From Macrostomum lignano (taxonomy: Eukaryota): DNA of 64,000 nt. The stretch is from positions 1-64,000 of the forward strand of contig NIVC01003423.1 in assembly GCA_002269645.1 (NCBI GenBank), written 5' to 3'. The notes under the pieces are model-generated. The model was given only the letters and a program-made list of their open reading frames with translations, was not told the origin of the DNA and searched no databases. Shown here one piece after another: positions 8,288-49,218 of the stretch; position 1 is the first letter of the stretch, and each line of letters starts with the position of its first letter. Position numbers and translations under genes: made by a program.

Positions 8288-10654
8288 CAGGGACAACTAA
8301 AACCCTCGGACGCGAAACGAGCCAATTCCTGGCAAAAAATCTGAGGGGCTCGCCTAAAAGTATTGTTCTATGGCTTTTTTGAAGTCTTCTCTGCTATCAG
8401 GCATTAACGGTTAGATTAAATAGTAAAGCGAGGCAATGTCGAGTATCTAATTTAAAGAATAGGAACCAGTGATATAATTACAATGTATTTACAATAAAGT
8501 AACCGCCATAGCAACAAAAAAACTCCAACGGCAAGAAGATAAAAGATGAAAGCAAAGATATAACTCCAACGGCAAGAAGATAAAGGATGAAAGCGAAGAT
8601 GAAACTCCAACGGCAAGAAAATAGAAGCAAATACGGAACTCCAAGGGCAAGACGACACAAACAGTCAGTAGCTCGTACATAAAGGAATGAAGAATTCCGA
8701 CTCCTGTGCAGCATCCGTTCCAATCCATGGCTTCTCTCTTCCATTGCTAAATAAAGCAAAACACTTGCGGTTGGTAGGGTGATTGTCGCTGACGAGAGCA
8801 ACGACACGGCCACCGTTGTTGTTAATTGCTTTAATACATTGGCTGACGCATTTTCGCAGAAACTCCGCAGACAAAATGTTGTCGGCAATAGTCGGACTAC
8901 AAACGGTTTTCTACCAAGTAATGGCTTTACCATTATGGCCAAAATTGTCCTAGCAACCTGGTCCGGATCGTCGACGGCTCGACCCAGAAGGTGACGGCAT
9001 CGATATCGAACGGACGGTTGTATGTACATTTCGTCAAACATAATTACGCAGTTTCGCTGAGCTCCTGATAGACTAGCAAAAACTGACTGGATCACATCGG
9101 CTGCGTCGGTTTCTGTGCCAACTTCTCCTGTACCTGCTAGTTGCAGCTGCAGCGTTCGGGGATGAGGCAATGGCAATAGCTTCCGTAGGTAAGAGTAAGC
9201 CGAACTACTGATCAAGTAGAGCAATGCTGACTGTCGCACTAGTGAAATGTCATAGCGGCGATTGTTCCGATTTACTAATGTAAGGCTAAGTTGTCGAATC
9301 AAAAACTGAAGCGACGGATCCAAATCAGAGTCAGAATCTATATCATCACTGATTCTACTAACAAACGCTTCGACTTCACGTTGGGGATTGGCGTCGGAAT
9401 GTTTGCACCGCACGACAACAGCATCCAGTTGCGACCAGCGCTTAAGTGTCGGTTGAAATCCCAACAAGTCTCGAACCGAAATCGGTGTATGCAGTTTGAA
9501 TGCACGAATCAGAAAGTTGGGTGAGACAAAAATTCGAATAGACAAGTCTCCATCTTTATCTAACGTAAACAAGTAAACGTCTTCGTTCAGAATAGCTGTG
9601 TTCAGTGCATGTCGAGATACGACATCCGAATTTTTCACCTCAGCTCGAAAACTTTCCCATGCTGGCAAAAAATCAAGCAGCTGAAAAGCGTACATCTCAT
9701 CGATGTCGCCGCACCTCGCGTCAGAAAGAACACCGCGCTTTTCGGCCTGTCGGTCCTGGTCTAAAATAAGAGTAAAAATAAAAGTAAGATAATTGTGAGC
9801 GGCAAAATCGATATAGACGCTAAGTGTTGAGCAATCTTTAAGTTACGTACCTTGGTTCTGAACAAAACACGAGCTAGGAACTCCATTAAAAACAGAAGGA
9901 GGATTAATTGGCCTTTCGGTAGAGTTTTTCTTGACCATTGGAGCATCGCTTGGCCAATGCTTTACGCACACGCCCATATTGTCAGTCACTCTCTAAAATA
10001 ATAAATTTTGGGTTTCAAGTTGTTTGGACGAGACTGGCATGCAGAATTGAAGCGGAATTATGCAGCAGAAATGACAGCAAATGATCTGGTTTCTTACCTG
10101 GAGAATATTTGGCAGCGCCTTTCTCCATCGCTCTCGCTCCTGTGGATCTCTGGGAAACGCAAATATCCGTGTTCGAACGGCTTCAGAGTTGTAATTTGAC
10201 GAGCACGGACATACGCTGCACTTTCTTGGCATTTCATCAAGTGAATAAAAAATGCTTCTCTTGATGTAGTTCAGCTTAGCTTCACTGCTGGCCGCAGCTA
10301 AAGCAATTTTAACGTACTTTAATTCAAATTAGCGGGCAGTTAATGACATTTAACGCCCGATTGTCTATTTCAAACTTACTTTAATGCAAATTAGCGGGCA
10401 GTTAATGTCACTAACTGCCCGCTAATTTTGTTCCACTTTGTCAAGGACAAAAATGTCTATGGCACAATAATAGTAATACCCATGCTTTAAGGGCGTTAAT
10501 GGGAAAATCAGAGGGCGCCGTTTAATGGCATTAAAAGGCAAGAATAAGTGCCCAGCGGGCACAAAGGTCATGGTACAATACTTTTAAGCGAGCCCCTCAG
10601 ATTCTTTGCCATGAATTGGCTCGTTTCGCGTCCCGAGGGTTTTAGTTGTCCCTG
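8288..10654 (-). mobile_element. P-element-superfamily DNA transposon, internally deleted (2367 bp)
   Basis: ~85-bp TIRs starting CAGGGACAACTAAAACCCTCGG (8288 on +; 10654 on -). Perfect 8-bp TSD ACTGAAAA at 8280-8287 and 10655-10662. Encodes THAP plus P-type transposase. Confidence 0.92.
8665..10232 (-). pseudogene. Spliced THAP-domain P-element (THAP9-like) transposase; exons 10232-10098, 9992-9851, 9760-~8665; frameshift at ~8875 and C-terminally truncated
   Basis: THAP C2CH motif: MPRKCSVCPC...FAFP..RERW + VCVKHW...PPSVF. Two GT-AG introns (phases 0 and 1) join the exons in frame. Catalytic motifs CVIMFDEMYI and VVALVSDNHPTN; the second is reached only after restoring 1 nt in a T-run. Confidence 0.85.
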
Positions 10655-10823
10655 ACTGAAAAAAATACACTACGGAGAATGGATGTTTTCATTTTTTCCA
10701 GCATATTTGTTAATTGCTTTTGATAGAAGGCAGACCCAATGATCATCTTTTTGATAGGACCTGCCTCCTAAAGTGTTTCAGGAAGCGTAGTTTCCCGGCT
10801 TTCTACTTGAGTTATCCTTGTAA

Positions 10824-10988
10824 GAGACAGGAGCGCCACCCCAAGAAACAGGGGGTGCCACACCGAGAGACAGGGGCGCCCACCGAGAGACAGGGGTGCC
10901 ACACCAAGAGACAGGGGCGCCCTCCAAGAGACAAGGCCGCCCTCCAAGAGACAGGGCCGCCCACCAAGAGACAGGGGCGCCCACTAAG
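10824..10988. repeat. Minisatellite, ~21-bp unit AGAGACAGGGGCGCCC(ACC), ~8 copies
   Basis: Visible tandem units. Confidence 0.85.
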
Positions 10989-11359
10989 AGCATCATTAAG
11001 TGAAAAAGGTTGGCAGAAACGACAGGAGACCCATTTTAACAGAAACTTGATTGTCCAAACTTATCACTCACTAGAGATCTATACTTTCTAGCCATCCTTT
11101 TACAAGAAGTACTTAAAGCACTTTTCGTATTGATTCGATCTTTAAGCAGGAGAGAATGCGTGTAAGTTCGAGTAGAGAACTAAAAAGGATGGCCTAATCC
11201 CTAGGGGAAGAGGAAAGATATTAATGATGAGTTGCCCTACCACCCCAGCAGCCAATGCGACTGCAGACAGACCCGCAACCAATCTCTGAGTCATTGCGAA
11301 TTCTGCTTTAATATCAGCAGTCTGACAGACCGTTCAAACTTATCCTAGGTAAAGAAGAC

Positions 11360-14300
11360 ATGGGCTGCGCTTGCGTTACTCAGGCCGCTTCGAACGGCGC
11401 TTCGTCTCGCCCGGCGCCAAGGACCGCTAAGCAGAATCTGGACGATCAAATCGGCGATTACCTTACGGAGTCACAGATTGGCCTGGTTAGAGAGACTTGG
11501 GCCATACTGTGCGATGACCTGCGTGGCGCTGGAGTGCTCATGTTTACCAGGTAAGGGAACAGGTATTTATCGCGATGGGTTGGGCATATTATTGGTCATA
11601 CGTAGCTATTATTAGTCATAGCTAGCATTGGTCATAGCAAGTATTGGTCATAGCCTAGTATTGGTCATAGCTAGTGTTGGTCATAGCAAGTATTGGTCAT
11701 AGCTAGTATTGGTCATAGCTAGTATTGGTCACAGCAAGTATTGGTCATAGCAAGTATTGGTCATAGCTAGTATTGGTCATAGCTAGTATTGGTCATAGCC
11801 TAGTATTGGTCATAGCCTAGTATTGGTCATAGCTAGTATTGGTCATAGCTAGCTCGTACTATTGGTCACAGCTGGGTGCACGGGAAGGTTAACAGCACAT
11901 TTATTGCTCGCTAGTAGTATTCAGATGTTTTGAGATGGCATGAGCACAATGCTATTATTCCTGATGTATCCCTGCAAGCAGGATTGGATTCCTGCATGAA
12001 CGGAGGCAGTTTTATTGCACCGCACACTCATGCGTTACTTGACACCTCTTCTATTCGCTTTGTGAGCTCGGATCGCTGGAATTTGCTTCTGAAAAGGAAT
12101 TTCAGTAGCTTTTTAAAAAAACCAATATTCCTAAAACAATAGATTTCTTACTGTGATCGAGCTATCTTACAAAAAATTCAAAATTTATTGTCTTACCATT
12201 TATGAAGTCAAGTGAATTTTCCACGAAATTTTACGGTTTAGTGCTTAAACTGCATGAGTGTTTTCATGAACTTTTTTATAAAGTTTGAAGTTTCTTGTTA
12301 AATATGAGGAATTATTTGTTTAAAAAGGCAATGCTAATATCTTTTTAAATTAACACTCAACCTCCGTGTATGTAACAGGTATCTAACAGATGCCATCAGT
12401 GTGTAAAAAGGTGTCTAACAGGTAGCATTCATCCATTTATTTTCATCGAACACCAAAACAAGGCTATTTCAAACTGACCGGGACGTGAGGGACCTGTTCT
12501 ACAGACTGATGGCTGCAGACCCCAGCCGTCAATCAAGCGGCAGAGACGCGGGCAAATTCGATCGAGAAAAGGTAGAAAGACACGGAATTGCAGTGATGCA
12601 ATCGCTGGGAGCTGCTGTCGACTGCCTGGATGACACCCTGATGCTCAACTCCGTGCTGCTGTCACTTGGCGGGGCGCATCAGGCCTTCCATGTGCGACCG
12701 GAGTACATCATGGTGAGCTGAGCCGGCTGGGGATATAGCGGACTTGTACAGATCCTGATAGATAGGTATGTAGTCAGCATCTTCATCCTGCTCAGCATCT
12801 TCATCCTGCTCAGCATCTTCATCCTGCTCAGCATCTTCATCCTGCTCAGCATCTTCATCCTGCTCAGCATCTTCATCCTGCTCAGCATCTTCATCCTGCT
12901 CAGCATCTTCATCCTGCTCAGCATCTTCATCCTGCTCAGCATCTTCATCCTGCTCAGCATCTTCATCCTGCTCAGCATCTTCATCCTGCTCAGCATCTTC
13001 ATCCTGCTCAGCATCTTCATCCTGCTCAGCATCTTCATCCTGCTCAGCATCTTCATCCTGCTCAGCATCTTCATCCTGCTCAGCATCTTCATCCTGCTCA
13101 GCATCTTCATCCTGCTCAGCATCTTCATCCTGCTCAGCATCTTCATCCTGCTCAGCATCTTCATCCTGCTCAGCATCTTCATCCTGCTCAGCATCTTCAT
13201 CCTGCTCAGCATCTTCATCCTGCTCAGCATCTTCATCCTGCTCAGCATCTTCATCCTGCTCAGCATCTTCATCCTGCTCAGCATCTTCATCCTGCTCAGC
13301 ATCTTCATCCTGCTCAGCATCTTCATCCTGCTCAGCATCTTCATCCTGCTCAGCATCTTCATCCTGCTCAGCATCTTCATCCTGCTCAGCATCTTCATCC
13401 TGCTCAGCATCTTCATCCTGCTCAGCATCTTCATCCTGCTCAGCATCTTCATCCTGCTCAGCATCTTCATCCTGCTCAGCATCTTCATCCTGCTCAGCAT
13501 CTTCATCCTGCTCAGCATCTTCATCCTGCTCAGCATCTTCATCCTGCTCAGCATCTTCATCCTGCTCAGCATCTTCATCCTGCTCAGCATCTTTATCCTG
13601 CTCAGCATCTTCATCCTGCTCAGCATCTTCATCCTGCTCAGCATCTTCATCCTGCTCAGCATCTTCATCCTGCTCAGCATCTTCATCCTGCTCAGCATCT
13701 TCATCCTGCTCAGCATCTTTATCCTGCTCAGCATCTTCATCCTACTCAGCATCTTCATCATCCTACTCAGCATCTTCATCATCCTTCTCAGCATCTTCAT
13801 CCTGCTCAGCATCTCCATTCTGCTCAGCGTCTTCATCATCCTTCTCAGCATCTTCATCCTGCTCAGCAGCTTCATCCTACTCAGCATCTCCATTCTGCTC
13901 AGCATCCTCATCGTGCTCAGCATCTTCATCCTGCTCAGCATCTTCATCCTGCTCAGCATCTTCATCCTGCTCAGCATCTTTATCCTGCTCAGCATCTTCA
14001 TCCTGCTCAGCATCTTCATCCTGCTCAGCATCTTTATCCTGCTCAGCATCTTCATCCTGCTCAGCATCTTCATCCTGCTCAGCATCTTCATCCTGCTCAG
14101 CATCTTTATCCTACTCAGCATCTTCATCCTACTCAGCATCTTCATCATCCTACTCAGCATCTTCATCATCCTTCTCAGCATCTTTATCCTGCTCAGCATC
14201 TTCATCCTGCTCAGCATCTTCATCCTGCTCAGCATCTTCATCCTGCTCAGCATCTTCATCCTGCTCAGCATCTTTATCCTACTCAGCATCTTCATCCTAC

Positions 14301-16157
14301 TCAGCATCTTCATCATCCTACTCAGCATCTTCATCATCCTTCTCAGCATCTTCATCCTGCTCAGCAGCTTCATCCTACTCAGCATCTCCATTCTGCTCAG
14401 CATCCTCATCGTGCTCAGCATCTTCATCCTGCTCAGCATCTTCATCCTGCTCAGCATCTTCATCCTGCTCAGCATCTTTATCCTGCTCAGCATCTTCATC
14501 CTGCTCAGCATCTTCATCCTGCTCAGCATCTTTATCCTGCTCAGCATCTTCATCCTGCTCAGCATCTTCATCCTGCTCAGCATCTTCATCCTGCTCAGTA
14601 TCTTTATCCTACTCAGCATCTTCATCCTACTCAGCATCTTCATCATCCTACTCAGCATCTTCATCATCCTTCTCAGCATCTTCATCCTGCTCAGCATCTT
14701 TATCCTGCTCAGCATCTTCATCCTACTCAGCATCTTCATCATCCTACTCAGCATCTTCATCATCCTTCTCAGCATCTTCATCCTGCTCAGCATCTCCATT
14801 CTGCTCAGCGTCTTCTTCCTACTCAGCATCTTTATCCTATTCAGCATTTATATTATCCTACTGAGCATCCCCATCCAATCTAAAGCGCCTTTACCCGAGT
14901 CAGCAAGATAACCTCGAAAGCACACAGAATTTGGATACTAATCTTCCTTCTAATTGACGTTAAGAAGCTGAAAATTTGATGAGCTCATCAGAAATGCCTT
15001 CCCAGGCTACAAATTAATCATTTTTTCGACAAACAGCATTCCGGTTGCATTAGTTGCCGTTTGAAAATGGATTATTTTTACTGAATTACACTCGCTAAGA
15101 TCCCTTTTTAAAGCTTTCGAGCCTGCTGTTTTCTATAGGAAATGAATTGAATGGTCTCTGCTGAAAGCACGGAAATGCAATCAATTAATGCAACAAAATG
15201 GATAATGGAAATTGATAATGGAAAAATTCAAATCAGCTTTGAGAACAAAATTTCGGTTCACTTGAAGGTCTTCAATATTGATATAACTCGTACTGGAGTT
15301 CGCGAAGCAAGCGTACATGGCTTACTCATAGCTTATAATAGACCAATGGATAACATGGACTATTAAATTTTGATAATTTGGACTGGAAGCAAAACTAATT
15401 TACAAAGCGGTTCTTCTTTGCGGCTTTCTGATTAAAATTTCAACCACTTTTAGCGCACAAGATAGCAGATGAAATTACAGAAGTCAAATCTGACGCTCAT
15501 AAACTGAATATTCAGCTAGAAATGAACGGAAAGAACTTTTTAAAATTATTATTTGATATTTTTCTCTGCATAATGAAAGATTATCCAATCCTTCACTGAG
15601 TCAAAGAATCTCTTTGCAATTGAATTGAATCATTCAATTCAATAAGTCTTGCATGCAAAAGAAAGATAGCTTCAGCAACCGCGCCGCCCCCATCGGCACC
15701 TTCATTGGCGCCTTTCTTAGCGCCTCTCTCCTCATTGGCGCCTTTCTTAGCGCCTTTCCCCTTATTGGTGCCTTTGTCAGCGCCTTTCTCCTCTTGGCAT
15801 CTCTGACAGCCTCTTTCCAATTAAAATCTTACAACCCTGACTGCATCAACGTAGCGAATGACAGCCCCTAGACGCTACTCACGTGACCTCAAACACTTAT
15901 TTGCACGTATTTAAAACAAATTTACGTCACCATGCAACCCCAATTTCAATGACCAGCGCCTCTGGCCCGCTGTCAGCTTCGCGCTGAGGGAACGACTGGC
16001 TGACTGCTACACAGCTTCCGTTGATAGGGCGTGGCGCGAGGTTTTCCGGTACATTGCTGGCAAAATGGAGGCCGGAATACGACTGCAGCAGCAGCAGCAA
16101 CAGCAGCAGAGGTCAGAGTCCAGTTCCGGTCCCTTAGCAACTTTGCACACAGTCTAA
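11360..16157 (+). CDS. Globin (globin X-like, N-terminally acylated); join(11360..11550,12463..12712,15957..16157), 213 aa
   Basis: N-terminus MGCAC. A/B helices YLTESQIGLVRETW...GVLMFTRLF; CD1 Phe (RDLF); distal His (VERHGIAVM); proximal His (LGGAHQAF); G/H helices RLWPAVSFALRERL..YT..VDRAWREVFRYIAGKM. GT-AG introns at the conserved B12.2 and G7.0 positions keep the frame. Confidence 0.93.
11585..11875. repeat. Intronic minisatellite, ~16-bp unit ATTGGTCATAGCTAGT
   Basis: Tandem units within globin intron 1. Confidence 0.9.
12775..14870. repeat. Intronic 18-bp satellite CAGCATCTTCATCCTGCT (~2.1 kb, >100 units)
   Basis: Perfect units to ~13590, then variant units with higher-order duplication. 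Lies in globin intron 2. Confidence 0.97.
15690..15815. repeat. Short ~30-bp degenerate tandem repeat (ATTGGCGCCTTTCTTAGCGCC...)
   Basis: About 4 imperfect units. Confidence 0.65.
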
Positions 16158-24656: not shown

Positions 24657-24872
24657 TGTAGACTAAGGCAGAGAGATACAACTGAGAGTTGACGAAGCCT
24701 CTTGGCGTTTATTAGATCGATACGCAGGTTAAATACGATACAACGATTGTTACATAACTGGGTATAAAAGATAGAGACAGGGGTGGGTGAAAAGCACATA
24801 CATGCTGTACAATAGCAACCCCCACCCCACTCTAGCGACTGGCGCATACAAGTACACTTGCAACTCACTACA
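24657..24872 (-). repeat. 3' LTR of the gypsy element (216 bp)
   Basis: Identical to 35505-35720 except for 2 transitions; contains AATAAA on the minus strand. Confidence 0.95.
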
Positions 24873-25089
24873 ATCATACATGCGCAACAGTCGGCCGAGT
24901 CGGCCGATCCGGCCGACCGATTTGGCGGCCAACCAAGTAAGTCGCAAAATTGATTAACCGCCAAAAAAAACGAAAAAACAAAAGACGAAAAAGGGGAAAG
25001 GAAAAGGAAAAAACGAAAAAAAGGGAGCAAAGAGAAAGAGAAAAACACAAAAAGAGTTGTAAGTGCTGTAAGTTGCAGCACTGAAGACA

Positions 25090-25992
25090 AGGTAAGTCGC
25101 ACCGAGGGCGAGCTAAGTCGCACCGAGGGCAAGCTAAGTCGCAGCAGGACCGAGCTAAGTCGCATCGAGGGCGAGCTAAGTCGCACCGAGGGCAAAATAA
25201 GTCGCACCGAGCGAGAGCTAAGTCGCACTAAGTCGCAGCAGGACCGAGCTAAGTCGCACCGAGGGCGAGCTAAGTCGCAGCAGGACCGAGCTAAGTCGCA
25301 CCGAGGGCGAACTAAGTCGCACCGAGCGAGAGCTAAGTCGCACTAAGTCGCAGCAGGACCAAGCTAAGTCGCACCGAGGGCGAGCTAAGTCGCAGCAGGA
25401 CCGAGCTAAGTCGCACCGAGGGCGAACTAAGTCGCACCGAGCGAGAGCTAAGTCGCACTGAGGGCGAGCTATGTCGCAGCAGGACCGAGCTAAGTCGCAC
25501 TAAGGGCGAGCTAAGTCGCACCGAGGGCAAAATAAGTCGCACCGAGCGAGAGCTAAGTCGCACTAAGTCGCAGCAGGACCGAGCTAAGTCGCACCGAGGG
25601 CGAGCTAAGTCGCAGCAGGACCGAGCTAAGTCGCACCGAGGGCGAGCTAAGTCGCAGCAGGACCGAGCTAAGTCGCACCGAGGGCGAACTAAGTCGCACC
25701 GAGCGAGAGCTAAGTCGCACTAAGTCGCAGCAGGACCGAGCTAAGTCGCACCGAGGGCGAGCTAAGTCGCACCGAGCGAGAGCTAAGTCGCACCGAGGGC
25801 GAGCTAAGTCGCAGCAGGACCGAGCTAAGTCGCATCGAGGGCGAACTAAGTCGCACCGAGCGAGAGCTAAGTCGCACTAAGTTGCAGCAGGACCGAGCTA
25901 AGTCGCACTGAGGGCGAGCTAAGTCGCAGCAGGACCGAGTAAGTCGCAGCAGGGCCGAGGTAAGTCGCAGCAGGACTGAGTTAAGTCGCAGA
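25090..25992. repeat. Subterminal array of ~21-bp units built on TAAGTCGCA inside the hAT element
   Basis: About 45 units such as GAGCTAAGTCGCACCGAGGGC / GAGCTAAGTCGCAGCAGGACC. The same core occurs next to both TIRs. Confidence 0.92.
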
Positions 25993-26340
25993 GCATCTTT
26001 AGGATTATTAGGATAGGATTAGTTTAGGATGAATTTAATGTATCACTTACTAGGGTGTAGGCTACGTGTGCATTAACGCATCAATTTGAAAAATTAAGAA
26101 TTACGAAGCCAGAAATGGCTAAGGAATAGAAATAGGGATAGAATAACTTATAAGCAGTAATTTTTCAGCCCTATTACAATTGCAAATCATACTTTTAATA
26201 ATATTTAATTAGCAAATTAAAACTGCAAGATTCTAACGGTCTTATATATGAACTTAGAAGAACTGTAGTCTTAATGATTATGCATGTACCATTGTAATAA
26301 TTGATTAAAATTGTAGCAGATTAAAACTGATAAAAAACTT

Positions 26341-28735
26341 TCAAAATAGTCCACTTAGCAAATCAGAATCAGAATCTTTAATTTCCTCGTCTACGTTGGA
26401 TTCTTTTTGCCGTTGACCTCCAGGAGCATCAGAACGCCAGTGTTTTTTCAGCCAATCATTGACATAAATATCCGGCTTAAATTTCATCAGCGGAGGCCCA
26501 TTTATTCGAATCCGTAGTAGATGCTCCAATGTTTTTGGTGCCAAGCGTGTTCTCCTGTCATAGGCAATGTGCTTATAGATAGAAAACCCTCTTTCAGCCT
26601 CAGCTGATGATATTGGCAAAGTTAACACAACCATAATTAGATTCTTTATTCTGGGCAGCCATTCAACAGTTCTTGTCTCTAGAAAGTGATAGAAAGTGAC
26701 TCCAAAATTTCACCGGACCTTTGCCTTTGTAGGCACAGAAGTCAACACTATGCGAAGTGATCAAACTTTTTAGGAGTAGACCGAACTGACCAGAGATTGT
26801 CCTTTCTGTAGCGCGTTCTGAAGCATCTGCATCTCTAGAGTCTGAATCAGAAAGATGGTCCTCTGTTTCAGATTCAGAGCTGTCATCTTCCATTCCAAAC
26901 CGTCTAGCAAGAGGTATGATTCTCGAACTGTATGTAAAGACAGTATGTAATGTTTCAGCATTAGGCAATAACACTGGGTTGAGCACATTAAATATTGAGT
27001 AGTCATCCTCAGGAAAATAATTACGCAGCTGATCAATTATGCTATCAATGATTCGACTGCGAATCTCATCCAGTGCTGGATAAGCTCCCATGTCAACAAC
27101 ACTGCCACGTCCACTAGCATCAAATAATCTATTTCTTAGAGATCTGTCTGCAGCAGAACCTGGTTGCTTCAACTCAAACCTCTCTGTTGGATCGCTGCTT
27201 CCAGGGCCGGAAGGACAAGCAAAGTTAGAATAAGATAGGTCTCTTGTGTGACATCCTGAATGGTATTCCAGCTGCGGATATCCATCTGCAGTTCCCAAAA
27301 CTCGACGACACTTGCAGGAAGCCAAAAAGTCCACAATGCGAGGACCATTGTTCGTTTTTAAGGTTTCTAGTGAATGGATAAGGTTAGTGTGGCGTTCTTG
27401 CAAGCCAATAAATGTACCCTTGGCTCTTTGAAACTGCAAGGACTCAAATTCCAGTAATTTTAGAATGTCCATGAGAAATAGATGTAATGAATAATACCGG
27501 ACATTTTGCAATGTTTTCAATAATCCAGAGGCAGTTGCTTTACTTTCGTCATCAAAGCCTGAGGAAGGTGATTTGATATTTTCTAAATTTGTCAGAAGCA
27601 AGTAGTACGACTTTCGAATCACATCAAGAGCAGACACTTCCGATGCAACCCACCTGATGCGATATATTCTTTTTAATTCATAGAAAACCAAGTTGAGTGC
27701 TTCCGAAGTTTGTGCCAAAGATGCCTTACGTTTAACAGTGTGGCTCATATAAAATTTGTGTAGAGAATTTATATTCTTATCGAGATGTTGCATAAATGGG
27801 AAGATTTCAAAGGCATGATAGATTGAAAGTTCTAACTTATGCGCTGCACAATGGTGCTGAAAAAATTGTTTGCTAGCCCAAGGCCTCAGTTGACTTATTA
27901 ATCCCACTCGACTTCCTGTCATTACGGATGCACCATCAGTTGTCACCCCCATAGCCTTCGTTTGATTTCATCTTCTAGCTTGTCATCCGAAAATAAACGG
28001 ATGAGAAGTTCATAAATGCTTCGTCCAGTCTCTACTTCAGTCAGACGTTTAAACCGATAAAAAAACATCAAAGGTTGGCTGTTTTCAAGAACTCTGAAGT
28101 ATATCATGACGTAGCTGTTTGAATGAATATCAGACGTTGTATCTAGTACAATAGAAATCGGAAGATTGTCAGCACTTTTAATGTAATTCACAAATGTCCG
28201 ATGCATTGTATTACTGATTGATTCCACCATTGCTGCGGCACTTTTGCGATGCTTATGATGGCTCCCCATATCCAACCCATTTTTTACTTGTAAATCAATC
28301 ATATTTGGATGAGCACTGAATGGAATATTAGATTTGACTTCGGCATAAACTGTTGTCAAAACTCGGGCTGTTATTTCATCTCGTTTAGTTTTAGCTAGTC
28401 TAGCGGCCTCATTCATCTGTTTGAGTTGCTTTGCAAGAACTGAAGTATGTTTTTCCTTCATCCACTTTATGGCGTCACTGTAAAGTGTATTTGATGAATG
28501 TTCCTGTAGTTTTCTTCGTACGCTATCTTTTGCATGACCTTTGGGAATGTAGCCTTGTTCTGTTGCAAAAGTTAACTTACGTTGGCTCTCTAGATTTGTC
28601 TCCTTTTTCTTATGTGCATTCAAAAATTTTCTGCAGATCCGACATTGTATTCCAGATCTTGATAGATCTTCGGTGTTTTGAACATATTGAAACCATGTCT
28701 TCATTTCTTGTGACACAAATTTTCTTGAAAATGAT
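26341..28735 (-). pseudogene. hAT transposase, broken by a 1-nt deletion (~27950) and a 10-bp tandem duplication (26680-26699)
   Basis: Motifs CRIC; ISIVLDTTSD (D1); GVTTDGASVMTG (D2); HHCAAHKLEL (CxxH); IRW; TLPISSAEAERGFS (hATC, catalytic E). Adding one G to a G5 run and removing one TAGAAAGTGA copy gives a continuous ORF. Confidence 0.9.
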
Positions 28736-28904
28736 CTGCAATGGTCAAATTAGAGAATATTTTGGGATTTGGACTATTTGTGAGTATCTAAAAGCAATAT
28801 GCTAATAAGTGCAATACACAGTACACTATACATTAATTTACAGTTCGTCAGTTTCCATTTACTTACTGTGACTGGTGCATCTCCAAAGAATGTAACCACT
28901 CCTC

Positions 28905-30494
28905 TCAAAAACCAGATGTATCCTCCCAGTCCTTTTTAGGGAAAACTTCAATATTTTCGCCCATCATAGAGGAAGACGAGGGCTTTGATGCTGAAGTGGC
29001 TAGACATGCGTCTGCAGATGTGCTTATGCATGGTATTTTTCTTTGCGATGGCCCTGCTTCTGCAGTATTTACTTGTACTATTTCAACATCACCTGAACCC
29101 CTTGAGTCGCTCGAATCTAAATCAACAATAGGACTTTGGCAAAGTGATCGTTTCGTTGATTGTCTTTGAATATTTACTTGCCTAATAATTTCCACTTGTA
29201 GTTTGCTTGTTTGCTGGTCATTCTCCAACAACTCTCTTCTTTCCTGTACATTTGCAGCAGAGCAAAAATTAGAAGTTTCTGCAGCAGCAGTTTGAACAGC
29301 ATGATCTCGATTAGCTGCTATTTGCTCTGAAAATTCATAGGACCTGGCCAATTCACTACGGTGTGAGCTTTCAGAACATGGAGCTGGAGCAGGAGCTAGT
29401 CGCATTTCGATTCTTTCTGTTGCTGATGAAGCAGATGCTAATGCTGAGTCTGCCAATGTACATGCTTCTCTTGAAGGTGTATTTATGATGGCTTCAATAT
29501 TGTCCTCTAAAATCCAATGAGCACCTGAGCAGTCATTTTCTCTACCTGGAGTCAACTGTCCAAGTTTCCACCTTGTAAAAAGCAAAGGCTTTCGTAAATC
29601 ACTGCCGGATTCAGGGCACCGGTTTATTGAATAGTCCTCATGACCAAGTTCATCCCATTCTCTTGCTGGCTTTAAGATGTAGTTGGGCTTGTCTCTTAGC
29701 CTACGATAAATGGACTCAAAAAATGTGCACCTGTTATTTTGCGTACTTCGTGCATAGATGATCATGTAATGCACATTGTTCCTAATAATTTCAGCTAATG
29801 AGTTATCAATGATAATTTTATCTTCATAAACAGGTCTTCTTTGTGTTGCATGCATTTTAGCTAGTCGCAGTTTTCCAATGCTACTGGCAGTTGTGGAACT
29901 TGAACTGTCCGATTCTGATCTAGAAAAGTCTCGTTGATACAAGAGAATAATGGCCATAGCACTTTTACCATTCCCATTCTTTAATGCATTTGGTTCTGTT
30001 GGAATTGTCTTACTAGCAGACTTGAAAAAATCAATGATGGATGACTGCGATGATCCACTAGGAGCGGAACTTGGCAGCCCATGTCTAGTTTTTCCCTGAT
30101 ACCCAATAGATGTATCGGTAAAAAACATATCTGCTGCTTCCTGCTTCTCTTTTGATGCAATAACAAAGAAACTGCTGTCCGTTTTGAAGCCCGAGGACCG
30201 ATAGAAGTCAGCAGAAAATGAAACCACAGGTCGTCTAAAATCGCCGCTATATTCTTGAACTCCAATCAGAAGAAAATCACGGAGTCTCACTGGCACTGAT
30301 CCTAATAGCATTGCAGTTGTGGAACAAACTTTCTTCAGCTCAATGAACTCTGAAAATTCTTGAGATCCAATATTAGGCTCATCAGTATTTAACTCATTTA
30401 TAACAATTGAGCACTCACTCTCAGCTAGAATACCATTGATAGCTAGGATGCCACTTAGAATCAGTAGGCAAAGACAACTAAGGCTGTACATCAT
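28905..30494 (-). CDS. Signal-peptide plus lamin-tail-domain (LTD)-like protein carried in the hAT element, 529 aa
   Basis: ATG 30494 follows a TTTCACAG acceptor. Hydrophobic leader MMYSLSCLCLLILSGILAINGILA; IVINELNTDEP...EFIELK (LTD start motif); YSINRCP...LTPGRENDC (a motif that typically closes LTD modules); then a disordered linker. The ORF is directly seen; the domain call is by eye. Confidence 0.75.
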   Translation of the reverse strand: MMYSLSCLCLLILSGILAINGILAESECSIVINELNTDEPNIGSQEFSEFIELKKVCSTTAMLLGSVPVRLRDFLLIGVQEYSGDFRRPVVSFSADFYRSSGFKTDSSFFVIASKEKQEAADMFFTDTSIGYQGKTRHGLPSSAPSGSSQSSIIDFFKSASKTIPTEPNALKNGNGKSAMAIILLYQRDFSRSESDSSSSTTASSIGKLRLAKMHATQRRPVYEDKIIIDNSLAEIIRNNVHYMIIYARSTQNNRCTFFESIYRRLRDKPNYILKPAREWDELGHEDYSINRCPESGSDLRKPLLFTRWKLGQLTPGRENDCSGAHWILEDNIEAIINTPSREACTLADSALASASSATERIEMRLAPAPAPCSESSHRSELARSYEFSEQIAANRDHAVQTAAAETSNFCSAANVQERRELLENDQQTSKLQVEIIRQVNIQRQSTKRSLCQSPIVDLDSSDSRGSGDVEIVQVNTAEAGPSQRKIPCISTSADACLATSASKPSSSSMMGENIEVFPKKDWEDTSGF

Positions 30495-30938
30495 TCTGTG
30501 AAAGATTAAGTCGAGTATATGATTTTGGTGATAAAATAAAATTGATTTATGAGTATTACTATATAAATAAAACATTTAAAAGCCCTTACCTTTACCAATT
30601 CATGTACAGAAAGTAAGTGTAAATACAACCAATTGCCTTGGTAGTTTAGTTATATGCTCGTATCAGATGCAGGCAGACAGCATAGGCTGCCAAGGTGCTA
30701 TAAGTTAAGGTTAACTTTCACTATTTGGCTTTACAGACTGCTTTTATCGCTGCATGCATTGACTTAGCCTTAGCTTGTGCCATCATACTCATACAGCTAT
30801 ATATACATATGTATCTCTGCCACTCCCCACTTTTGCAACCTTACACTGTACAATCATGCCTAAAACACTCCGTGTCAAGTGTACTGTTCTAGTGCCACAT
30901 GGGGTACAAATACGATTAGGAATGACAAGAGTCAAAAC

Positions 30939-31225
30939 CATACATGCACAATAGTTGGCCGATATGGACGACTGATTTGGCGGCCAACCAAGGTAAGTTG
31001 CAAAAATGCCCACCCAAATAAATACCAAAGTAGTATTAAGTAGCTGACGAGGCATTTTGCCTTAATAAAGACAGTCATAGTTACTCCTGCCGTTTACCCA
31101 AAGTTGCGTTGATTTTGCTTTCAGGTTTTTTTCATGTAAGTCGCATTTTTGGCCGAAAACTACGTCGCATTTTTGTTAAAACTAAGTCGCACGGCCGACC
31201 AAATTTTGGAGGTTGCGCATGTATG
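30939..31225 (+). mobile_element. Internal MITE-like unit of the same hAT family (diverged left end plus the shared right end)
   Basis: CATACATGCACAATAGTTGGCCGA...GGCGGCCAACCAAGGTAAGTTGCAAAA resembles the 24875 terminus and is collinear with the MITE at 48140. It has no matching TSD of its own. Confidence 0.7.
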
Positions 31226-31387
31226 ACTACAATCCTCCCCGGCGAAAAGGATCAATAACATTCGAACGAATAATTCGAAGGAAACATAAGAACAGTAAAA
31301 CATTCGAAACAATATTGGTATAAAGAATTTCTCGCTTTCAAATAATTTGCAACAGTCAGTAGAACAGTCACTGAGTCAATCAAAAAT

Positions 31388-34300
31388 TCAACCGGCCACA
31401 TAGCGATCCACCGGCATCCGCCTACGCACCGGGTAGCGTCTCGGGGGCGGCTCCTCGTCCGCCTCATCGCCGCCGTGCGCCGCGTGCGCAAAGGGCGGCT
31501 GCAGGAAGCGCTCTCCGTCAGGGACTGGCAGTATCCGCGGCCGCAGACGATTCACATTCACCCTGCGGGTCCGGCCGTTCTCGATCTTTCGAATTTCGAC
31601 TACCAGATCCCGCTGCGACAGCACCTGCCAGCCCGGCTCCCAGTACGGCGCCAGCTTGGAGCCCCTCAGCTCGATGCGCAGCAGGACCTCGTCTCCAGGA
31701 CTGAACGTGCGCAGCTGCCCGGTCGACCTGTCGTAGCCGCTCTTTTGCTCGCCAGCGGCCTGCACCAGATGCTCCTCGACAAACTCTCGAATTCGCAGCA
31801 GGTCGCCCTCGAGCTTGTCGGCGTAGGTGCGCACGTCATAGAATCGCCTGGACTGCTGGCTGATGACCAGCAGGCTCGGATCGCGCCCGGTGAACACCTT
31901 CAGTGGCGGCAGCTGTGTTGAGCAGTGCACCCGGGAATTGTAGGACAGCAGGATCAGTGGCAGCTTGTCCTCCCACTCGCTCTCTCGCTCGGTGAAACAC
32001 CTGAGTAACTGCAGCACTGACTTGTTGCCCGACTCTGCTAATCCGTTGCCTTTGGGATTGTAAGCCGTTGTTCTTGTCTTCGTGACTCCCAGGCCTCGCA
32101 GAGGGTCTTGAAAAAGCTGAGACTCGAAATTCGGTCCTTGATCGGAGTGGATGACTCGGGGAAGTCCAGTCTGGGAGCAGATGGAGAGGAAGGCGCGAGC
32201 AGTAGTCTCAGCAGTCTGGTCAGGAATCGCCACGGCCGTCAGGTACTTGGAAAATTGATCCTGAGCCACCAGCAGGTATTTGTTGCCGCGCGATGATGGC
32301 GCCACCTTGACGATGTCGATAGCCACAGAATCCCACGGCGAGCCGATTGGCAGTTCTCCGAGTGGCGAGCTGGGCCGCGAGCCCGCTTTCTTCTCCTGAC
32401 AGACAGAACAACTCTGACAGTGTTGCACGATGTCTTCAGCCATGCCGGGCCAGTAGGCGGTCAGTTTCAGTGTGCGGTAGCATTTCTCGGCTCCGAAATG
32501 ACCTCCCAGACCTTCGTGAGCGTTGGTCAAAAACTGTTGTCGAAGCCGTGCTGGCACCACTGGAACCTCCCGCAGGCCGTCCGGGTCATTGAACTTGCGC
32601 AGTAGAACACCGTCATTATCCAGCTTCAGCTTCTTCCAGATTCTGCCGAGTTGCTGCAGTGGCCCTGCTCGCCATCTGGGTGCAATTTCTGCGTCCTTGT
32701 CCATCGCCTGAATCACCTGGCTGAGCTCCGGGTCATGTCGCTGCGCAGTTTTGAGCTCTTCAGTGTCGATTTCCGGAGTCAGCTGCGTAGCTGCGACTTC
32801 TTGGCCGTGCAGTCTGGACAGCGCGTCAGCATCTGTGTTCTCAACGCCTCTTCGGTACTTGACGGTGAAGTCGAACTCTTGAAGCAGCAGACGCCATCGT
32901 CCTAGCCTGCCGTAGCTGTCAACTCTCTGTGAATCGATGTAGGTGAGCGGGCAGTGATCCGTGTGCACCGTGAAATGCTTGCCGAGAAGATAGTGGCGAA
33001 AAACTTTGAATGCGTGCAAGATGGCCAGGCACTCATTTTCTGTCGCAGAGTATTTCTTCTCAGCTGAATTGAATGCGCGGCTTGAGAACTCGATCACCGC
33101 CTCGCCTTGCTTCAGAATTGCACCGACTCCGCTGCCACTGGCATCCGTGAAGACTGAGAACTCCTTAGTGAAATCCGGGTTCACCAGGATCGGAGGACTA
33201 ATTAGGCACCTTTTGAGCTCATCGAAGGCCGTCTGGCATTCCGAAGTCCAGTCAAATGGGACGCCCTTGCCAGTCAGATGGTGCAGCGGTGCGGCGATGA
33301 CAGCGAAGTTGGCTACATGGCGTCGGTATTGGTTGCACAGGCCGATGAACTGACGCACCTCCTTGGCTGACCTCGGCTCTCTCCACTGCTGAATTGCCTC
33401 CAGCTTCTCCTGGCTGGGCTGGGCACCATCCTTTGAATACCGTGTGCCGAGAAAGGTCACTTCGGGTACCGCGATCTTGCACTTGGAGCCTCTTAATGTC
33501 AGTCCGGCTGCTCGAAGTCGCTCGAAGGTCTCTCGAAGTTGCCGCAGATGATCCGACTTGGTATTTGAGAAGCACAGGCTGTCATCGAAGAACGTGAAGA
33601 TGAAATCGCAGCCGTTGAAAACTTTTGACATTAGCATGCAGAATGTGCTTGGGCCCCCCGACAGACCTTGGGGCATTCTCTTAAATTGGTACAGCGGCAT
33701 CCCTGGTCCCGGACAGAAAGCAGTTTTTAGCTTGTCTTCTTCTGCCATCGGAATTTGAAAATAGCCTCCATTGAGATCCAACACAGAGAACACTGAACTG
33801 CCTGCGATTCGATCTCTTGCCTCCTCCATCAACGGAATTCCCTGTGCAGAGCGAATAGTCTTCTTGTTGATCTCTCGATAGTCTATGGTCAGGCGGAGAC
33901 TGCCATCCTTCTTTGTCACGTACACCGGTGGGGCCACGTACGGACTTTCGCTCAGCTCTATCACGTCGTTCTCCAGCAGTTCCTGAATCAGCTGCTCTAC
34001 CTTCTCCCGGTAATGCACAGGCATTCGGCGCGGTGGCACTCGGACAGGTACTTCATCCGAGAGAACAATTCGGTGCTGTTGCAGATGAGTTAGTCCCGGC
34101 TTTTTCTTGAACAAGTCTTTGAACTCCACCAGCAGCCGTTGTACATCAGGGTCATCGGTAGTCGGCAACTCGAACTCTTCACAGCTGAACTCGGGGACGA
34201 GTGCGTCTTCGATGTCAACTGGATCGCCGGTGTCAGCCTGGAATCTGGTGCTGCAGACTTGGCCGGCTTCTTGTGAAGATCCTGTGAAGTCCAGCTGCAA

Positions 34301-34723
34301 ATTATGCTTGCCGATGAAGTCGACTCCAACAATGACAGGGCAGACCAAACCTGACACAACGAAAAACAATTGCCGAGCTGTCACTCCACCGACTGTAAGT
34401 GGCAATTCGATTTGCCGTTCTATGCTAATTGGCTGCTTGTTCACTGAATGAAGTTGCACTCTGGCTGCAGTTGCCTGTCTGAGCTGGGATTTTGTCAGGA
34501 TGCTGGACTCAACTAGTGAGCACTGGCTTCCGGTGTCTAACAGCGCCTTCACACTTCTGCCATCAAGCTTGCACTCACACTGCGATAGTCGGTCGGGCGC
34601 GACGCTGCATCCGTCGAAGATCCCGCCGACTGTGAGCGCCGGCCTTGAAGCCGCTGCTGCTGGGCCCGCAGTTACTGCTGGCCGGGGTTGCGGGCCCGCA
34701 CACCCCAGCCTCTGGCGTTTCCC
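31388..34723 (-). CDS. pol: Gypsy Pol: protease, reverse transcriptase, RNase H, integrase
   Basis: ALLDTGS (PR); IDYREINK, LDLNGGYFQI, FKRMPQGL, FFDD (RT); VFTDASG, TENECLAI, ADALSR (RH); AHEG..GH..C..C, IHSDQGPNF, GNGLAES (IN). Uninterrupted ORF. Confidence 0.95.
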   Translation of the reverse strand, partial: GKRQRLGCAGPQPRPAVTAGPAAAASRPALTVGGIFDGCSVAPDRLSQCECKLDGRSVKALLDTGSQCSLVESSILTKSQLRQATAARVQLHSVNKQPISIERQIELPLTVGGVTARQLFFVVSGLVCPVIVGVDFIGKHNLQLDFTGSSQEAGQVCSTRFQADTGDPVDIEDALVPEFSCEEFELPTTDDPDVQRLLVEFKDLFKKKPGLTHLQQHRIVLSDEVPVRVPPRRMPVHYREKVEQLIQELLENDVIELSESPYVAPPVYVTKKDGSLRLTIDYREINKKTIRSAQGIPLMEEARDRIAGSSVFSVLDLNGGYFQIPMAEEDKLKTAFCPGPGMPLYQFKRMPQGLSGGPSTFCMLMSKVFNGCDFIFTFFDDSLCFSNTKSDHLRQLRETFERLRAAGLTLRGSKCKIAVPEVTFLGTRYSKDGAQPSQEKLEAIQQWREPRSAKEVRQFIGLCNQYRRHVANFAVIAAPLHHLTGKGVPFDWTSECQTAFDELKRCLISPPILVNPDFTKEFSVFTDASGSGVGAILKQGEAVIEFSSRAFNSAEKKYSATENECLAILHAFKVFRHYLLGKHFTVHTDHCPLTYIDSQRVDSYGRLGRWRLLLQEFDFTVKYRRGVENTDADALSRLHGQEVAATQLTPEIDTEELKTAQRHDPELSQVIQAMDKDAEIAPRWRAGPLQQLGRIWKKLKLDNDGVLLRKFNDPDGLREVPVVPARLRQQFLTNAHEGLGGHFGAEKCYRTLKLTAYWPGMAEDIVQHCQSCSVCQEKKAGSRPSSPLGELPIGSPWDSVAIDIVKVAPSSRGNKYLLVAQDQFSKYLTAVAIPDQTAETTARAFLSICSQTGLPRVIHSDQGPNFESQLFQDPLRGLGVTKTRTTAYNPKGNGLAESGNKSVLQLLRCFTERESEWEDKLPLILLSYNSRVHCSTQLPPLKVFTGRDPSLLVISQQSRRFYDVRTYADKLEGDLLRIREFVEEHLVQAAGEQKSGYDRSTGQLRTFSPGDEVLLRIELRGSKLAPYWEPGWQVLSQRDLVVEIRKIENGRTRRVNVNRLRPRILPVPDGERFLQPPFAHAAHGGDEADEEPPPRRYPVRRRMPVDRYVAG

Positions 34724-35477
34724 GGCTGTCGCCTGCTGTAGCAATCTCTGGCAATGTGGCCTTGTGGCAGTTGTAGCAGATGATGTCAGACTTCGAACGG
34801 TGCTGCGGTCTCGTTGTGCTGCTCGTCCTCACTCCACAGGCTGCCAGCTGCTGCAGCTGGGAACTCAGGGTGCTCACCGATGCCTGCAGACTCTGCACAG
34901 TGTCCCGCAGCTCCTGAACTTCGCTGGATTGGCTCGACTGAGGTTGCACCGCTGCTGCTGGGATGCTTGGCGAGCTGTGCTGCATCAGTAGCTGGGCCTT
35001 TTGAAGCGCTTGCTCTGAGGTCTTAACGCTGGAGTCCGCGCGAATCTGCCAGCTCACGGATTCGGGAAGGCCACAGACGAACTGATGGAACAGCAGAGCC
35101 TCTTGAGCATCTTTGTTGTCCACGGAGGAGCTTTTGAGCATCTTCTTTAACTCGTAAAGATACATGCGTAGAGTCTCATTCGACAAAATCTTCCTTGATT
35201 TGAACGCCTCCATGACGGCGAAGTGCTCGCGGTTCGGGTGGAATGCATCATCCAATGCCTGGACTACTTTGTCGTAGTCTGCCTGATCTCCTGCCGACAG
35301 TTCCAAATAAACGACGAGAGCCTCGCCATCCAAAAATGTGGCCAGTCGCTCCGCTTTGCACGTGTCCCACTTGTTGACTTTTGCGCATACATTGAAACGC
35401 TGCAGCCATTCCTTAAAGTTGCCGGTACTGAAAACTCTGGGCAGCGCTGCACTGGCGGTCAAACCTTTCTCAGCCAT
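34672..35477 (-). CDS. gag: Gypsy Gag with a CCHC zinc knuckle (1-nt deletion at ~34760 in this sequence)
   Basis: FKEWLQRFNVCAKVNKW... Adding one G turns CYNCHK-ATL into CYNCHKGHIARDC and ends the ORF at TAA 34672. Confidence 0.85.
34680..34723 (-). promoter_or_regulatory. -1 ribosomal frameshift signal (G GGA AAC plus stem-loop) between gag and pol
   Basis: Heptamer at 34723-34717 in the restored gag frame; 6-nt spacer; stem GGCTGGGGT/ACCCCGGCC with an inner TGCG/CGCA helix. The -1 frame is the pol ORF (GKRQRLG...). Confidence 0.75.
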
Positions 35478-48139: not shown

Positions 48140-49218
48140 CATACATGGGCAATAGTCAGCCGAGTTGGCCAATCTGGCGGCCAACCAAGGTAAGTTGCAA
48201 AAATGACTACTAGTAGGAATACAGATGTAGTACTAATTAGATGACAAGGCATTTAGCCTGAATAGGACAGTAATAGTTATTCCTGCCATTTACCCAAAAT
48301 TGTATTAAGTTTGCTTTAGTTTCTTTGACAGGTAAGTTGCATTTTTGGCCAAAAACTATGTTGCATTTTTTGTTAAAACTAAGTCATGAGAAAGGGCTTC
48401 TTGTAATACAGTATGAATGCTTTAAAAACCTATTCGTGTTACATTTATTTCTTAGAAAGACCATTATTTGAATTCTCGCAAAAATGCTAATATTTTTGTT
48501 TTAATGTTGTGAATGCAATTAATATTGTACGAAACCAATTTTGTTTTAAATACATGGGCAAAATGGTATAAATAGAAGCTCCGAGCGGGCCAAGAGAGCA
48601 ACCGTCCTTGACTCGTCGATTAATATTGAGCGAGCTAAATCTTAGAAGCAATCGCTTGAAAATTGACTTGTTCATTTCTTAGAGTATAAACCCCAAATTG
48701 GGAGTAGTATTAAGATCCGCTACAAGCGAGAAACCGCCTCAGGGCAGTAATAGTAAATTTGCCTCAGGGCAGAAGAACCGCTTCATAGTGAGAGAAGATC
48801 GCCTCAGGGCAGAAAAGGAGCATAAGCTGTGACCCTCTGATCCAGGGAATGCCCAGGACTGAGAGAATAATATTAGGGGAAGTATAGGAATAGAATAGAC
48901 AGTGCTATTAGACTGCTCAGGCCAGAAAGTACAATAGAAGTACAGACGCTAGCAGTAAAAGTACATACGCTACCAATAGAAGTACAGACGTTACCAATAG
49001 AAGTACATACGCTACTAGTAAAAGGCAAGTAATAACCAGCAATATTAACGAGGAATAACCCCTGCAACAGCTTGGTGGCAGAAAGTAAGGCTAAACAAAA
49101 GAATAAATAAGAGCCCTGGGACAGCTTTTGGTGACAGTGTGAAATTATTATTAAGAAGAAAGAAACACACCTAGCACAGTCACATGGCCAACTGAATTTT
49201 GGAGGTTCTGCATGTATG
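48140..49218 (+). mobile_element. Non-autonomous hAT MITE of the same family as 24875-31225, interrupted by a ~790-bp insertion
   Basis: Degenerate TIRs CATACATGGGCAA... / ...TTCTGCATGTATG. 8-bp TSD ATTATCAT/ATTATCAA. Collinear with 30939-31225. Confidence 0.8.
48387..49178. mobile_element. Probable solo LTR inserted in the MITE
   Basis: TG...CA ends with GTCA (or AGTCA) duplicated on both sides. Internal TATAAA, AATAAA and short repeats. Confidence 0.45.

Follow-up and report, generated by a model that had tools for sequence, protein, structure and literature searches.

Introduction

The transposases of hAT elements are among the best-studied of the eukaryotic cut-and-paste enzymes, and have been the source of many domesticated genes. 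Here we describe a hAT transposon of Macrostomum lignano located within the first 64,000 nucleotides of contig NIVC01003423.1 (GenBank assembly GCA_002269645.1), a stretch hereafter referred to in its entirety as the window. Positions 24875-31225 of the window, on the minus strand, constitute a dead copy of an element that is young and was once autonomous. Comparison with related sequences strongly supports a single gene of two coding exons, from which the progenitor would have made one transposase of approximately 1336 amino acids (aa) bearing an extended lamin-tail domain (LTD) at its N-terminus, an arrangement referred to as LTD-hAT. Taken as a whole, and including the mechanism proposed below, this account of the locus is considered probable.

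By its sequence features the element is assigned to the DUF4371 / FAM200-ZBED5-like (Buster-like) group of hATs. It has in common with that group an 8-bp target site duplication (TSD), short terminal inverted repeats (TIRs), subterminal repeats, a putative DDE/RNase-H-like core of the PF27073 type (via the M. lignano hypothetical protein P0003), the PF05699 domain and a CxxC...H motif ahead of the core. It differs in carrying some 540 extra N-terminal residues, in which a signal-peptide-like leader and the extended LTD are followed by a linker with a basic patch, and which are joined to the remainder through a phase-2 intron. The named relatives that were found, KIAA1586-like and ZMYM1-like proteins, are without this N-terminal module.

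Two further systems invite comparison. In the Drosophila P element the production of transposase is controlled by splicing, and the present element likewise has an intron within the transposase coding sequence, the retention of which would truncate the product to an N-terminal protein, here by a stop codon in the donor. However, the P element belongs to another superfamily, the truncated product of the hAT would be without the zinc-finger motif, some relatives (P0007) are intronless, and any regulation of the splicing would be hypothetical for the hAT. Bacterial extracellular nucleases of the ExeM/NucH type, on the other hand, present the same order of parts, namely a signal sequence, an LTD and a DNA-cutting enzyme. 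These differ in that the enzyme is an EEP/YhcR nuclease and not a DDE transposase, in that they are bacterial and truly extracellular, and in that their LTD is of the short canonical Pfam form; the likeness considered here covers the LTD and the domain order. In Shewanella ExeM, deletion of the LTD lowers activity in vitro, and a membrane-directing role has been proposed for this domain by Mans et al. (PMC6085458).

Boundaries, family and inactivation of the element

The element occupies 6351 bp (24875-31225), with all of its features on the minus strand (Table 1). A preliminary description, made from the sequence alone, had proposed a hAT bounded by TIRs and a TSD, under the coordinates 26341-30494; perfect 14-bp TIRs and an 8-bp TSD do exist, but at ends lying outside that interval. 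A search for TIRs and TSDs confined to the flanks of the open reading frames (ORFs; 25900-26345 and 30490-31400) found none, and the ends were found only through comparison with a second copy, L005. This copy aligns with positions 24871-31226 of the window and no further, the flanks being unrelated, and in both copies the TIR pair CATACATGCGCAAC...GTTGCGCATGTATG stands at the two edges. The TSDs differ between the copies, being ATTGTAGT in the window (ACTACAAT on the plus strand) and CTTGGGTT in L005. As the flanks are without similarity and the TSDs are different, the idea that L005 represents the same locus or an allele of it was ruled out. The two copies are separated by 31 substitutions and 8 indels, from which it follows that this hAT has moved recently.

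The transposase is 99% identical to P0003 (assembly GCA_002269645.1; locus L005), for which PF27073 and PF05699 matches are precomputed and whose cluster contains 18 member sequences. In the window, the third ORF of the transposase matched Pfam Dimer_Tnp_hAT (PF05699) with an E-value of 2.6e-7 (30.8 bits, the cut-off being 21.4), and this C-terminal dimerisation domain was also found by Pfam in P0003, P0007 and P0008. The PF27073 family (FAM200-ZBED5_RNase-like) precomputed on P0003 was not returned by a separate Pfam scan, and the motifs of the core were recognised by eye. Four features of hAT elements are therefore present, namely the 8-bp TSD, the short TIRs, the C-terminal dimerisation domain and the occurrence of copies at different loci.

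It could be argued that the sequence is not a transposon at all, and is instead a domesticated hAT-derived host gene comparable with ZBED5, FAM200 or KIAA1586. Among named proteins the KIAA1586-like and ZMYM1-like ones are the nearest to it, and its N-terminal domain is under purifying selection (see below), both of which would suit such a gene. Against this stand the intact TIRs and TSDs, the occurrence at separate loci of two or more near-identical copies whose inactivating lesions are their own, a non-autonomous derivative nearby and the 18 sequences of the P0003 cluster, and domestication is thus considered very improbable for this locus. Domesticated descendants may possibly exist elsewhere, for example the Sphenodon LTD protein P0190.

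The window copy is dead through three private lesions, namely a nonsense mutation and two frameshifts (Table 1). The nonsense codon is absent from L005 and from L001-3, three contigs with 95% nucleotide identity to the window, and alignment with L005 showed both frameshifts to be private also. These frameshifts, a lost G and a 10-bp duplication, are the two indels that had been postulated in the preliminary description. L005 has lesions of its own: its exon 1 carries two deletions, of 39 nt and 1 nt, and its exon 2 an insertion of 2 nt. The idea that the indels are assembly errors was dropped as unprovable; those of each copy differ, and the 10-bp duplication and the 39-bp deletion are unlike typical homopolymer errors. 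The loss of the single G could be a sequencing or assembly error.

Gene structure and evidence for a fused product

A 529-aa ORF runs on the minus strand from an ATG at 30494 to a TGA at 28907-28905. Past the TGA the frame stays open (EEWLHSLEMHQS) until a GTAAGT whose G lies at 28866, and the exon ends in phase 2 (CA/), such that its join to position 28735 reads ...HQSQ-SFSRKFVSQEMKTW, in the frame of the transposase ORF at 27943..28716. The ORF, its stop, the open frame beyond it, the donor and the phase-2 join had been put forward in the preliminary description, together with the 131-nt intron and its CTAAT and TTGCAG sequences, and all were recovered here. The transposase itself is split into three ORFs (27943-28716, 26663-27952 and 26341-26634). 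Once the lesions are repaired, the conceptual product computes to 1336 aa, where approximately 1337 had been estimated.

Several lines of comparison tie exon 1 to the transposase. The proteins P0001 (92-95% identical) and P0002 (52% identical) represent intact exon 1 ORFs that both end exactly at a phase-2 GTAAGT, directly past which the sequence diverges. The donor hexamer and its phase are conserved in L001-3, L004 and L005. At locus L006, where the transposase is 70% identical, an intron of 105 nt (GTAAGA...TTTTAG) interrupts the gene at the same point and in the same phase, and its removal leaves an open frame (...LETHQSA/YFSRKFVTNEMKTW). Since the intron lengths of 131 and 105 nt differ by 26, which is no multiple of three, only splicing keeps the frame in both. 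Altogether, the position and phase of the intron, or of its donor, are unchanged across three Macrostomum lineages. The L006 copy (8079-12260 of M. lignano contig NIVC01000196.1) keeps its 5' TIR along with the intron, but a stretch of about 560 bp that would encode the leader and the N-terminal half of the LTD is gone; the C-terminus of its transposase is disrupted too.

The fusion is also seen in more distant relatives. P0007 is an uninterrupted ORF of 1256 aa that contains the leader, the N-domain, a KKRKV patch, the W-motif, the CxxC zinc-finger motif and the hAT core. Its transposase is 30% identical to that of the window, and its N-domain matches with a BLASTP E-value of 7e-21. Searched against 1.84 billion representatives, a profile of the exon 1 ORF family retrieved 182 proteins at E <= 1e-3. 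A check of 19 related proteins with lengths of 900 aa and above showed the N-domain, the CxxC...H motif and the hAT signature motifs together in one ORF in at least 12, these fusion proteins spanning 1000-1260 aa. The Pfam hAT C-terminal domain was confirmed in five of a set of eight long relatives, with P0105 matching only below threshold, and in six of nine proteins over all scans. The W-motif lies upstream of the zinc-finger motif both in the intronless P0007 and in P0008, and is present in most long family members. At locus L008, a 97-nt intron (GTAAGT...TTGCAG) splits this conserved motif (FEWQTTKHFQ/DIWIKAIDEHQS), which is rebuilt only by splicing and is then comparable to KDWEDTSGF(R)EEWLHSLEMHQS of the window and MEWENKAHFQENWIDQITQYQS of P0008.

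These observations bear on the possibility that the element has two separate products, with an unspliced mRNA giving a secreted leader and LTD that end at the TAA of the donor, the transposase starting from an ATG in exon 2 (MKTW), and the intron being incidental or rarely used. Retention gives an immediate in-frame stop not only in the window but in every lineage with the intron (window, L001, L004, L006 and L008), the zinc-finger motif of the window and that of L006 both have a Met ahead of them, which is the point where the NCBI model P0004 begins, and a secretory leader is hard to square with a nuclear enzyme. Two separate products are nonetheless considered rather unlikely, given the uninterrupted ORF of P0007 and at least 12 further long relatives with the N-domain and hAT motifs in one ORF, the restoration of the L008 motif by splicing alone, the conservation of splice phase despite the 26-nt difference in intron length, and the fact that the W-motif of exon 1 forms part of the N-terminus of the transposase in intronless relatives. 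A truncated isoform could be made alongside the fusion.

The N-domain ORF was followed by a hAT at all six of the non-Macrostomum loci examined (L007, L008, L009, L010/L011, L012/L013 and L015), and at L009, L010/L011, L012/L013 and L015 the N-domain ORF and the hAT homologue were on the same strand. No TIRs were found at L007, where the contig probably stops short of the ends. Nei-Gojobori estimates of the ratio of nonsynonymous to synonymous substitution rates (dN/dS) for exon 1 were 0.21 (window versus L001) and 0.24 (window versus L004), with values of 0.15-0.19 for the domain proper. For the exon 1 ORF the values spanned 0.17-0.24, and hence it is not evolving neutrally; neutral evolution had been named in the preliminary description as a result that would speak against its proposal.

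It remained conceivable that the arrangement is a one-off chimera, in which a host exon for a secreted LTD protein ended up within a single hAT copy, by chance position or by transduplication, and is functionally unconnected with the transposase. Elements of the hAT type can capture host fragments, and in the window copy the exon 1 ORF does contain a stop codon. That stop codon, however, is private to the window copy, the ORF is under purifying selection, and the same arrangement recurs in L005 with its different TSD, in the 70% identical L006 and at six unrelated loci whose transposases are around 30% identical. A single chance capture is therefore regarded as exceedingly improbable. The earlier proposal of a fusion is borne out by the co-occurrence of LTD and transposase in six of six non-Macrostomum loci and in further Macrostomum copies, and the comparisons indicate that this fusion is ancient, conserved and under selection.

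Relationship of the N-domain to lamin-tail domains

At the level of profile comparison, the N-domain is well supported as a divergent, extended LTD with lineage-specific insertions. An alignment of 36 N-domains (A3) was compared by hhalign with an alignment of the eight repeats of the protein P0147 (A4), giving a probability of 99.7% and an E-value of 3.3e-25 over 182 columns, with the caveat that the A4 repeats were picked because the family profile had already found P0147. The match spans the whole 184-aa repeat, and its landmarks are INELN, EFIEL, FxIG, AxxLL, VDxVVY, SLxRC and TPGxxNxC. The P0147 repeats themselves match the Pfam LTD family PF00932 at 7.5e-95. In addition, a word-indexed profile search reached the PF00932-annotated proteins P0190-P0196, which include an "LTD domain-containing protein" of Sphenodon (P0190) and a flavobacterial "endonuclease". 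It is this whole-repeat match to PF00932-positive repeats, along with the retrieval of PF00932 proteins, that leads us to the LTD assignment. When the family members were themselves compared with Pfam, PF00932 was matched below threshold by four of 36 (best E = 0.016), and was the sole Pfam family matched by more than one member.

Relative to PF00932 proteins, the LTD of the hAT has extra helices and insertions and an additional conserved Cys, and lies below the Pfam threshold. Two confident AF2 models of the N-domain were strand-rich, with pLDDT values of 80.8 and 85.0 and pTM values of 0.84 and 0.88. Lamin tails were retrieved with the N-domain neither by sequence nor by fold search, and profile searches of the PDB by sequence with alignments A2 and A3 and with the true-LTD alignment A4 returned nothing relevant.

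The closest non-transposon relative of the N-domain is P0147, which is a candidate for the type of gene from which the domain was captured. The two have in common the whole 184-aa repeat (INELN..EFIEL..FxIG..AxxLL..VDxVVY..SLxRC..TPGxxNxC), the signal peptide, which is putative in the hAT, and the RC / NxC Cys pair, whereas P0147 has eight repeats and a transmembrane helix and is without a transposase. P0147 is an unnamed protein of 1693 aa. It starts with a signal peptide and ends with a transmembrane helix; between these lie the eight extended LTD repeats, each some 184 aa long and each with the RC...NxC cysteine pair. The architecture of this relative, and the conservation of the leader across the hAT family, agree with the earlier suggestion that the domain is of an extracellular type.

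Putative targeting signals and proposed mechanism

A hydrophobic leader was present in 60 of the 75 family proteins in which the LTD motif starts 12-45 aa after the Met. By eye, several of these leaders have the canonical n-h-c organisation of a signal peptide, such as those of P0007 (MYNIKKTILIFFIIFCYSAA/KDC) and P0028 (...GSVAS/EQ). Conservation is complete or nearly so for the Cys immediately ahead of the LTD and for the RC/NDC cysteines, and the RC/NxC pair is invariant in the extracellular LTD repeats too. Most long members also have a KRK-type patch between the LTD and the W-motif, which takes the form SQRKRPC in P0001, SPKKKRVC in P0002, AKKRKV in P0007 and, in decayed form, SQRKIPC in the window. 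One polypeptide thereby appears to carry predicted signals of both the secretory and the nuclear type. The leader and a nuclear enzyme might, speculatively, be reconciled by inefficient or dual targeting, or by a truncated leader and LTD protein produced upon intron retention, the latter being conceivable because the donor gives an immediate TAA, as does every phase-2 GTAAG donor examined.

On the strongly supported gene structure, exon 1 encodes the signal-peptide-like leader, the extended LTD, a variable low-complexity linker with the patch resembling a nuclear localisation signal (NLS), and the start of the W-motif, and the short phase-2 intron would then be removed. Exon 2 supplies the CxxC...H zinc-finger-like motif, followed by a putative catalytic core of the DDE/RNase-H-like type and, at the C-terminus, the hAT dimerisation domain. 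Judging from family membership, the transposase would bind the element at its 14-bp TIRs and at subterminal repeats of the TGCGACTTA type, and would catalyse excision and reinsertion by standard hAT chemistry of the DDE type, with 8-bp staggered integration generating the TSDs. The LTD may serve as an accessory module, either engaging DNA or chromatin or acting as a tether to a membrane or nuclear-envelope structure.

A number of points weigh against the interpretation of the locus as a dead hAT with a fused LTD-transposase gene. Pfam PF00932 gave no match at E <= 1 for the window ORF, P0001, P0002 or P0007, and Foldseek comparison of the two AF2 models with the PDB gave only weak matches to immunoglobulin-like (Ig-like) folds and carbohydrate-binding modules (CBM) at E >= 0.07, and no lamin tail. 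The LTD identity claimed in the preliminary description was supported by profile comparison and retrieval, whilst the Pfam family assignment stayed below threshold and the fold comparison was non-significant. A cleavable signal peptide would send the whole protein to the lumen of the endoplasmic reticulum (ER), where it would not meet DNA, and the LTD-transposase has no evident transmembrane segment that would stop its transfer. Among protein-database sequences no spliced Macrostomum product was found, and the ATG early in exon 2 (MKTW, at approximately 28704) could start a stand-alone transposase. The role that the LTD may have is drawn solely by analogy to the ExeM-type nucleases.

Whether the leader is a working signal peptide, by which this clade of hATs sends a transposon-encoded LTD protein into the ER, into the perinuclear lumen or out of the cell, is a matter on which we are doubtful. 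If true, the exported product would be either the whole LTD-transposase or the leader and LTD translated from an intron-retained mRNA, and the secretory pathway would have a step in the biology of a cut-and-paste DNA transposon. Possible uses would then include tethering to the nuclear envelope, delivery from cell to cell or from soma to germline, and a secreted factor that acts on the host. To our knowledge, nothing similar has been described for DNA transposons.

Distribution and significance

No description of an LTD-hAT, or of a hAT transposase with a signal peptide, was found in the open-access literature, and every database entry belonging to the family either is without a name or is called hypothetical, in keeping with the earlier statement that no description of the architecture was known. 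The NCBI gene models of M. lignano copies start inside the transposase, exon 1 having been missed by the annotation pipelines. The sequences retrieved indicate that LTD-hATs are a widespread, unannotated clade of hATs with a long-conserved N-terminal module, which is surprising for its leader. Taken together, the present results largely support the interpretation given in the preliminary description.

At L010/L011, one of the six loci above (L011: GCA_039028895.1, JBCCHF010000090.1), the LTD ORF and the hAT transposase ORF behind it lie on a contig deposited as a Bacteroidota metagenome-assembled genome (MAG). Because LTD-hAT is a transposon of eukaryotic type, this contig is probably mis-binned eukaryotic DNA.

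The module would add a new accessory domain to the repertoire of transposases. Its likeness to bacterial proteins that combine a signal peptide and an LTD with a nuclease offers a handle on the role of LTDs beside DNA enzymes, and the module poses a cell-biological puzzle in that secretory and nuclear signals are both predicted on one enzyme. As the copies are young and their lesions few and private, direct testing is feasible, and M. lignano is reported to be tractable for transgenesis.

Feature coordinates and other observations in the window

Table 1. Features of the LTD-hAT copy in the window, in order of position
Feature	Position	Strand	Remarks
8-bp TSD, 3' side	24867..24874	.	ACTACAAT on plus strand; identical to 31226-31233
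3' TIR	24875..24888	-	CATACATGCGCAAC on plus strand; perfect 14-bp inverted match to 31212-31225
3' subterminal minisatellite	25093..25991	-	21-bp unit carrying AAGTCGCA; Tandem Repeats Finder (TRF) period 21/42, ~20 copies of 42-bp unit
Coding exon 2, hAT transposase	26341..28735	-	Pfam Dimer_Tnp_hAT; 99% identity to P0003
hAT C-terminal dimerisation region	within 26341-26634	-	Pfam Dimer_Tnp_hAT
AEAERGFS motif	26581-26610	-	exon 2
Frameshift 2, 10-bp tandem duplication	26690..26709	-	TCACTTTCTA TCACTTTCTA; absent from L005; P0003 reads FWSHFLETRTVEW
IRWVASE motif	27638-27658	-	exon 2
HCAAHKLEL motif	27827-27853	-	exon 2
TTDGAS motif	27923-27949	-	exon 2
Frameshift 1, one G lost from G-run	27946..27951	-	GGGGG in window, one G more in L005; P0003 reads RRLWGVTTDGAS unbroken
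LDTTSD motif	28129-28152	-	exon 2
CxxC...H zinc-finger-like motif	28612-28644	-	exon 2
Phase-2 intron, 131 nt	28736..28866	-	GTAAGT ... CTAAT ... TTGCAG
Coding exon 1	28867..30494	-	leader, LTD, low-complexity linker, basic patch, W-motif; intact homologues P0001, P0002
W-motif	28869..28934	-	KDWEDTSGF(R)EEWLHSLEMHQS; conserved; part of transposase N-terminal region
Premature TGA	28905..28907	-	private CGA>TGA (CpG) nonsense; CGA (Arg) in L005 and L001-3
NLS-like basic patch, degenerate	29028..29048	-	SQRKIPC; putative, by motif alone
Extended lamin-tail-like domain	29523..30416	-	ECSIVINELN ... EFIELK ... AIILLY ... YMIIYAR ... SINRC ... LTPGRENDCSG; lineage-specific insertions
Hydrophobic signal-peptide-like leader	30423..30494	-	MMYSLSCLCLLILSGILAINGILA; as read in the sequence
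5' subterminal and untranslated region	30495..31211	-	TGCGACTTA-type subterminal repeats; as read in the sequence
5' TIR	31212..31225	-	perfect 14-bp match to 24875-24888
8-bp TSD, 5' side	31226..31233	.	identical to 24867-24874

The motif AAGTCGCA of the minisatellite unit occurs in both subterminal regions too. The array measures approximately 900 bp in the window and approximately 500 bp in L005 (12304-12808), and the L006 subfamily has an array related to it. Upstream of the ATG, at 30496-30589 on the minus strand, an acceptor (TTTCACAG/AATGATG) ends at 30496 and the sequence AAG/GTAAGG lies at 30589, 94 nt further up; this is possibly a 94-nt intron in the 5' untranslated region (5'-UTR), or else an acceptor for spliced-leader trans-splicing.

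A non-autonomous relative from the same hAT family, 1079 bp long and resembling a miniature inverted-repeat transposable element (MITE), was found at positions 48140-49218 of the window. Its ends are CATACATGGGCAAT... and ...(reverse complement) CATACATGCAGAACCTCCAAAATT, it is flanked by ATTATCAT and ATTATCAA, which match at seven of eight positions, and its end at 48140-48385 is about 80% identical to a part (30939-31188) of the 5' subterminal region of the main element.

The window seems rich in mobile elements. Directly beyond the 5' TSD of the hAT lies an ORF of 1118 aa (31388-34744, minus strand) in which protease (DTGSQ), reverse transcriptase (RT; FFDD) and integrase (H..H..C..C) motifs were recognised by eye, and which looks like the pol of a long terminal repeat (LTR) retrotransposon of the Ty3/Gypsy or BEL type. 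Other long ORFs of the window are located at 2509-6360 (1283 aa), 12679-14847 (722 aa) and 51543-53621 (692 aa).

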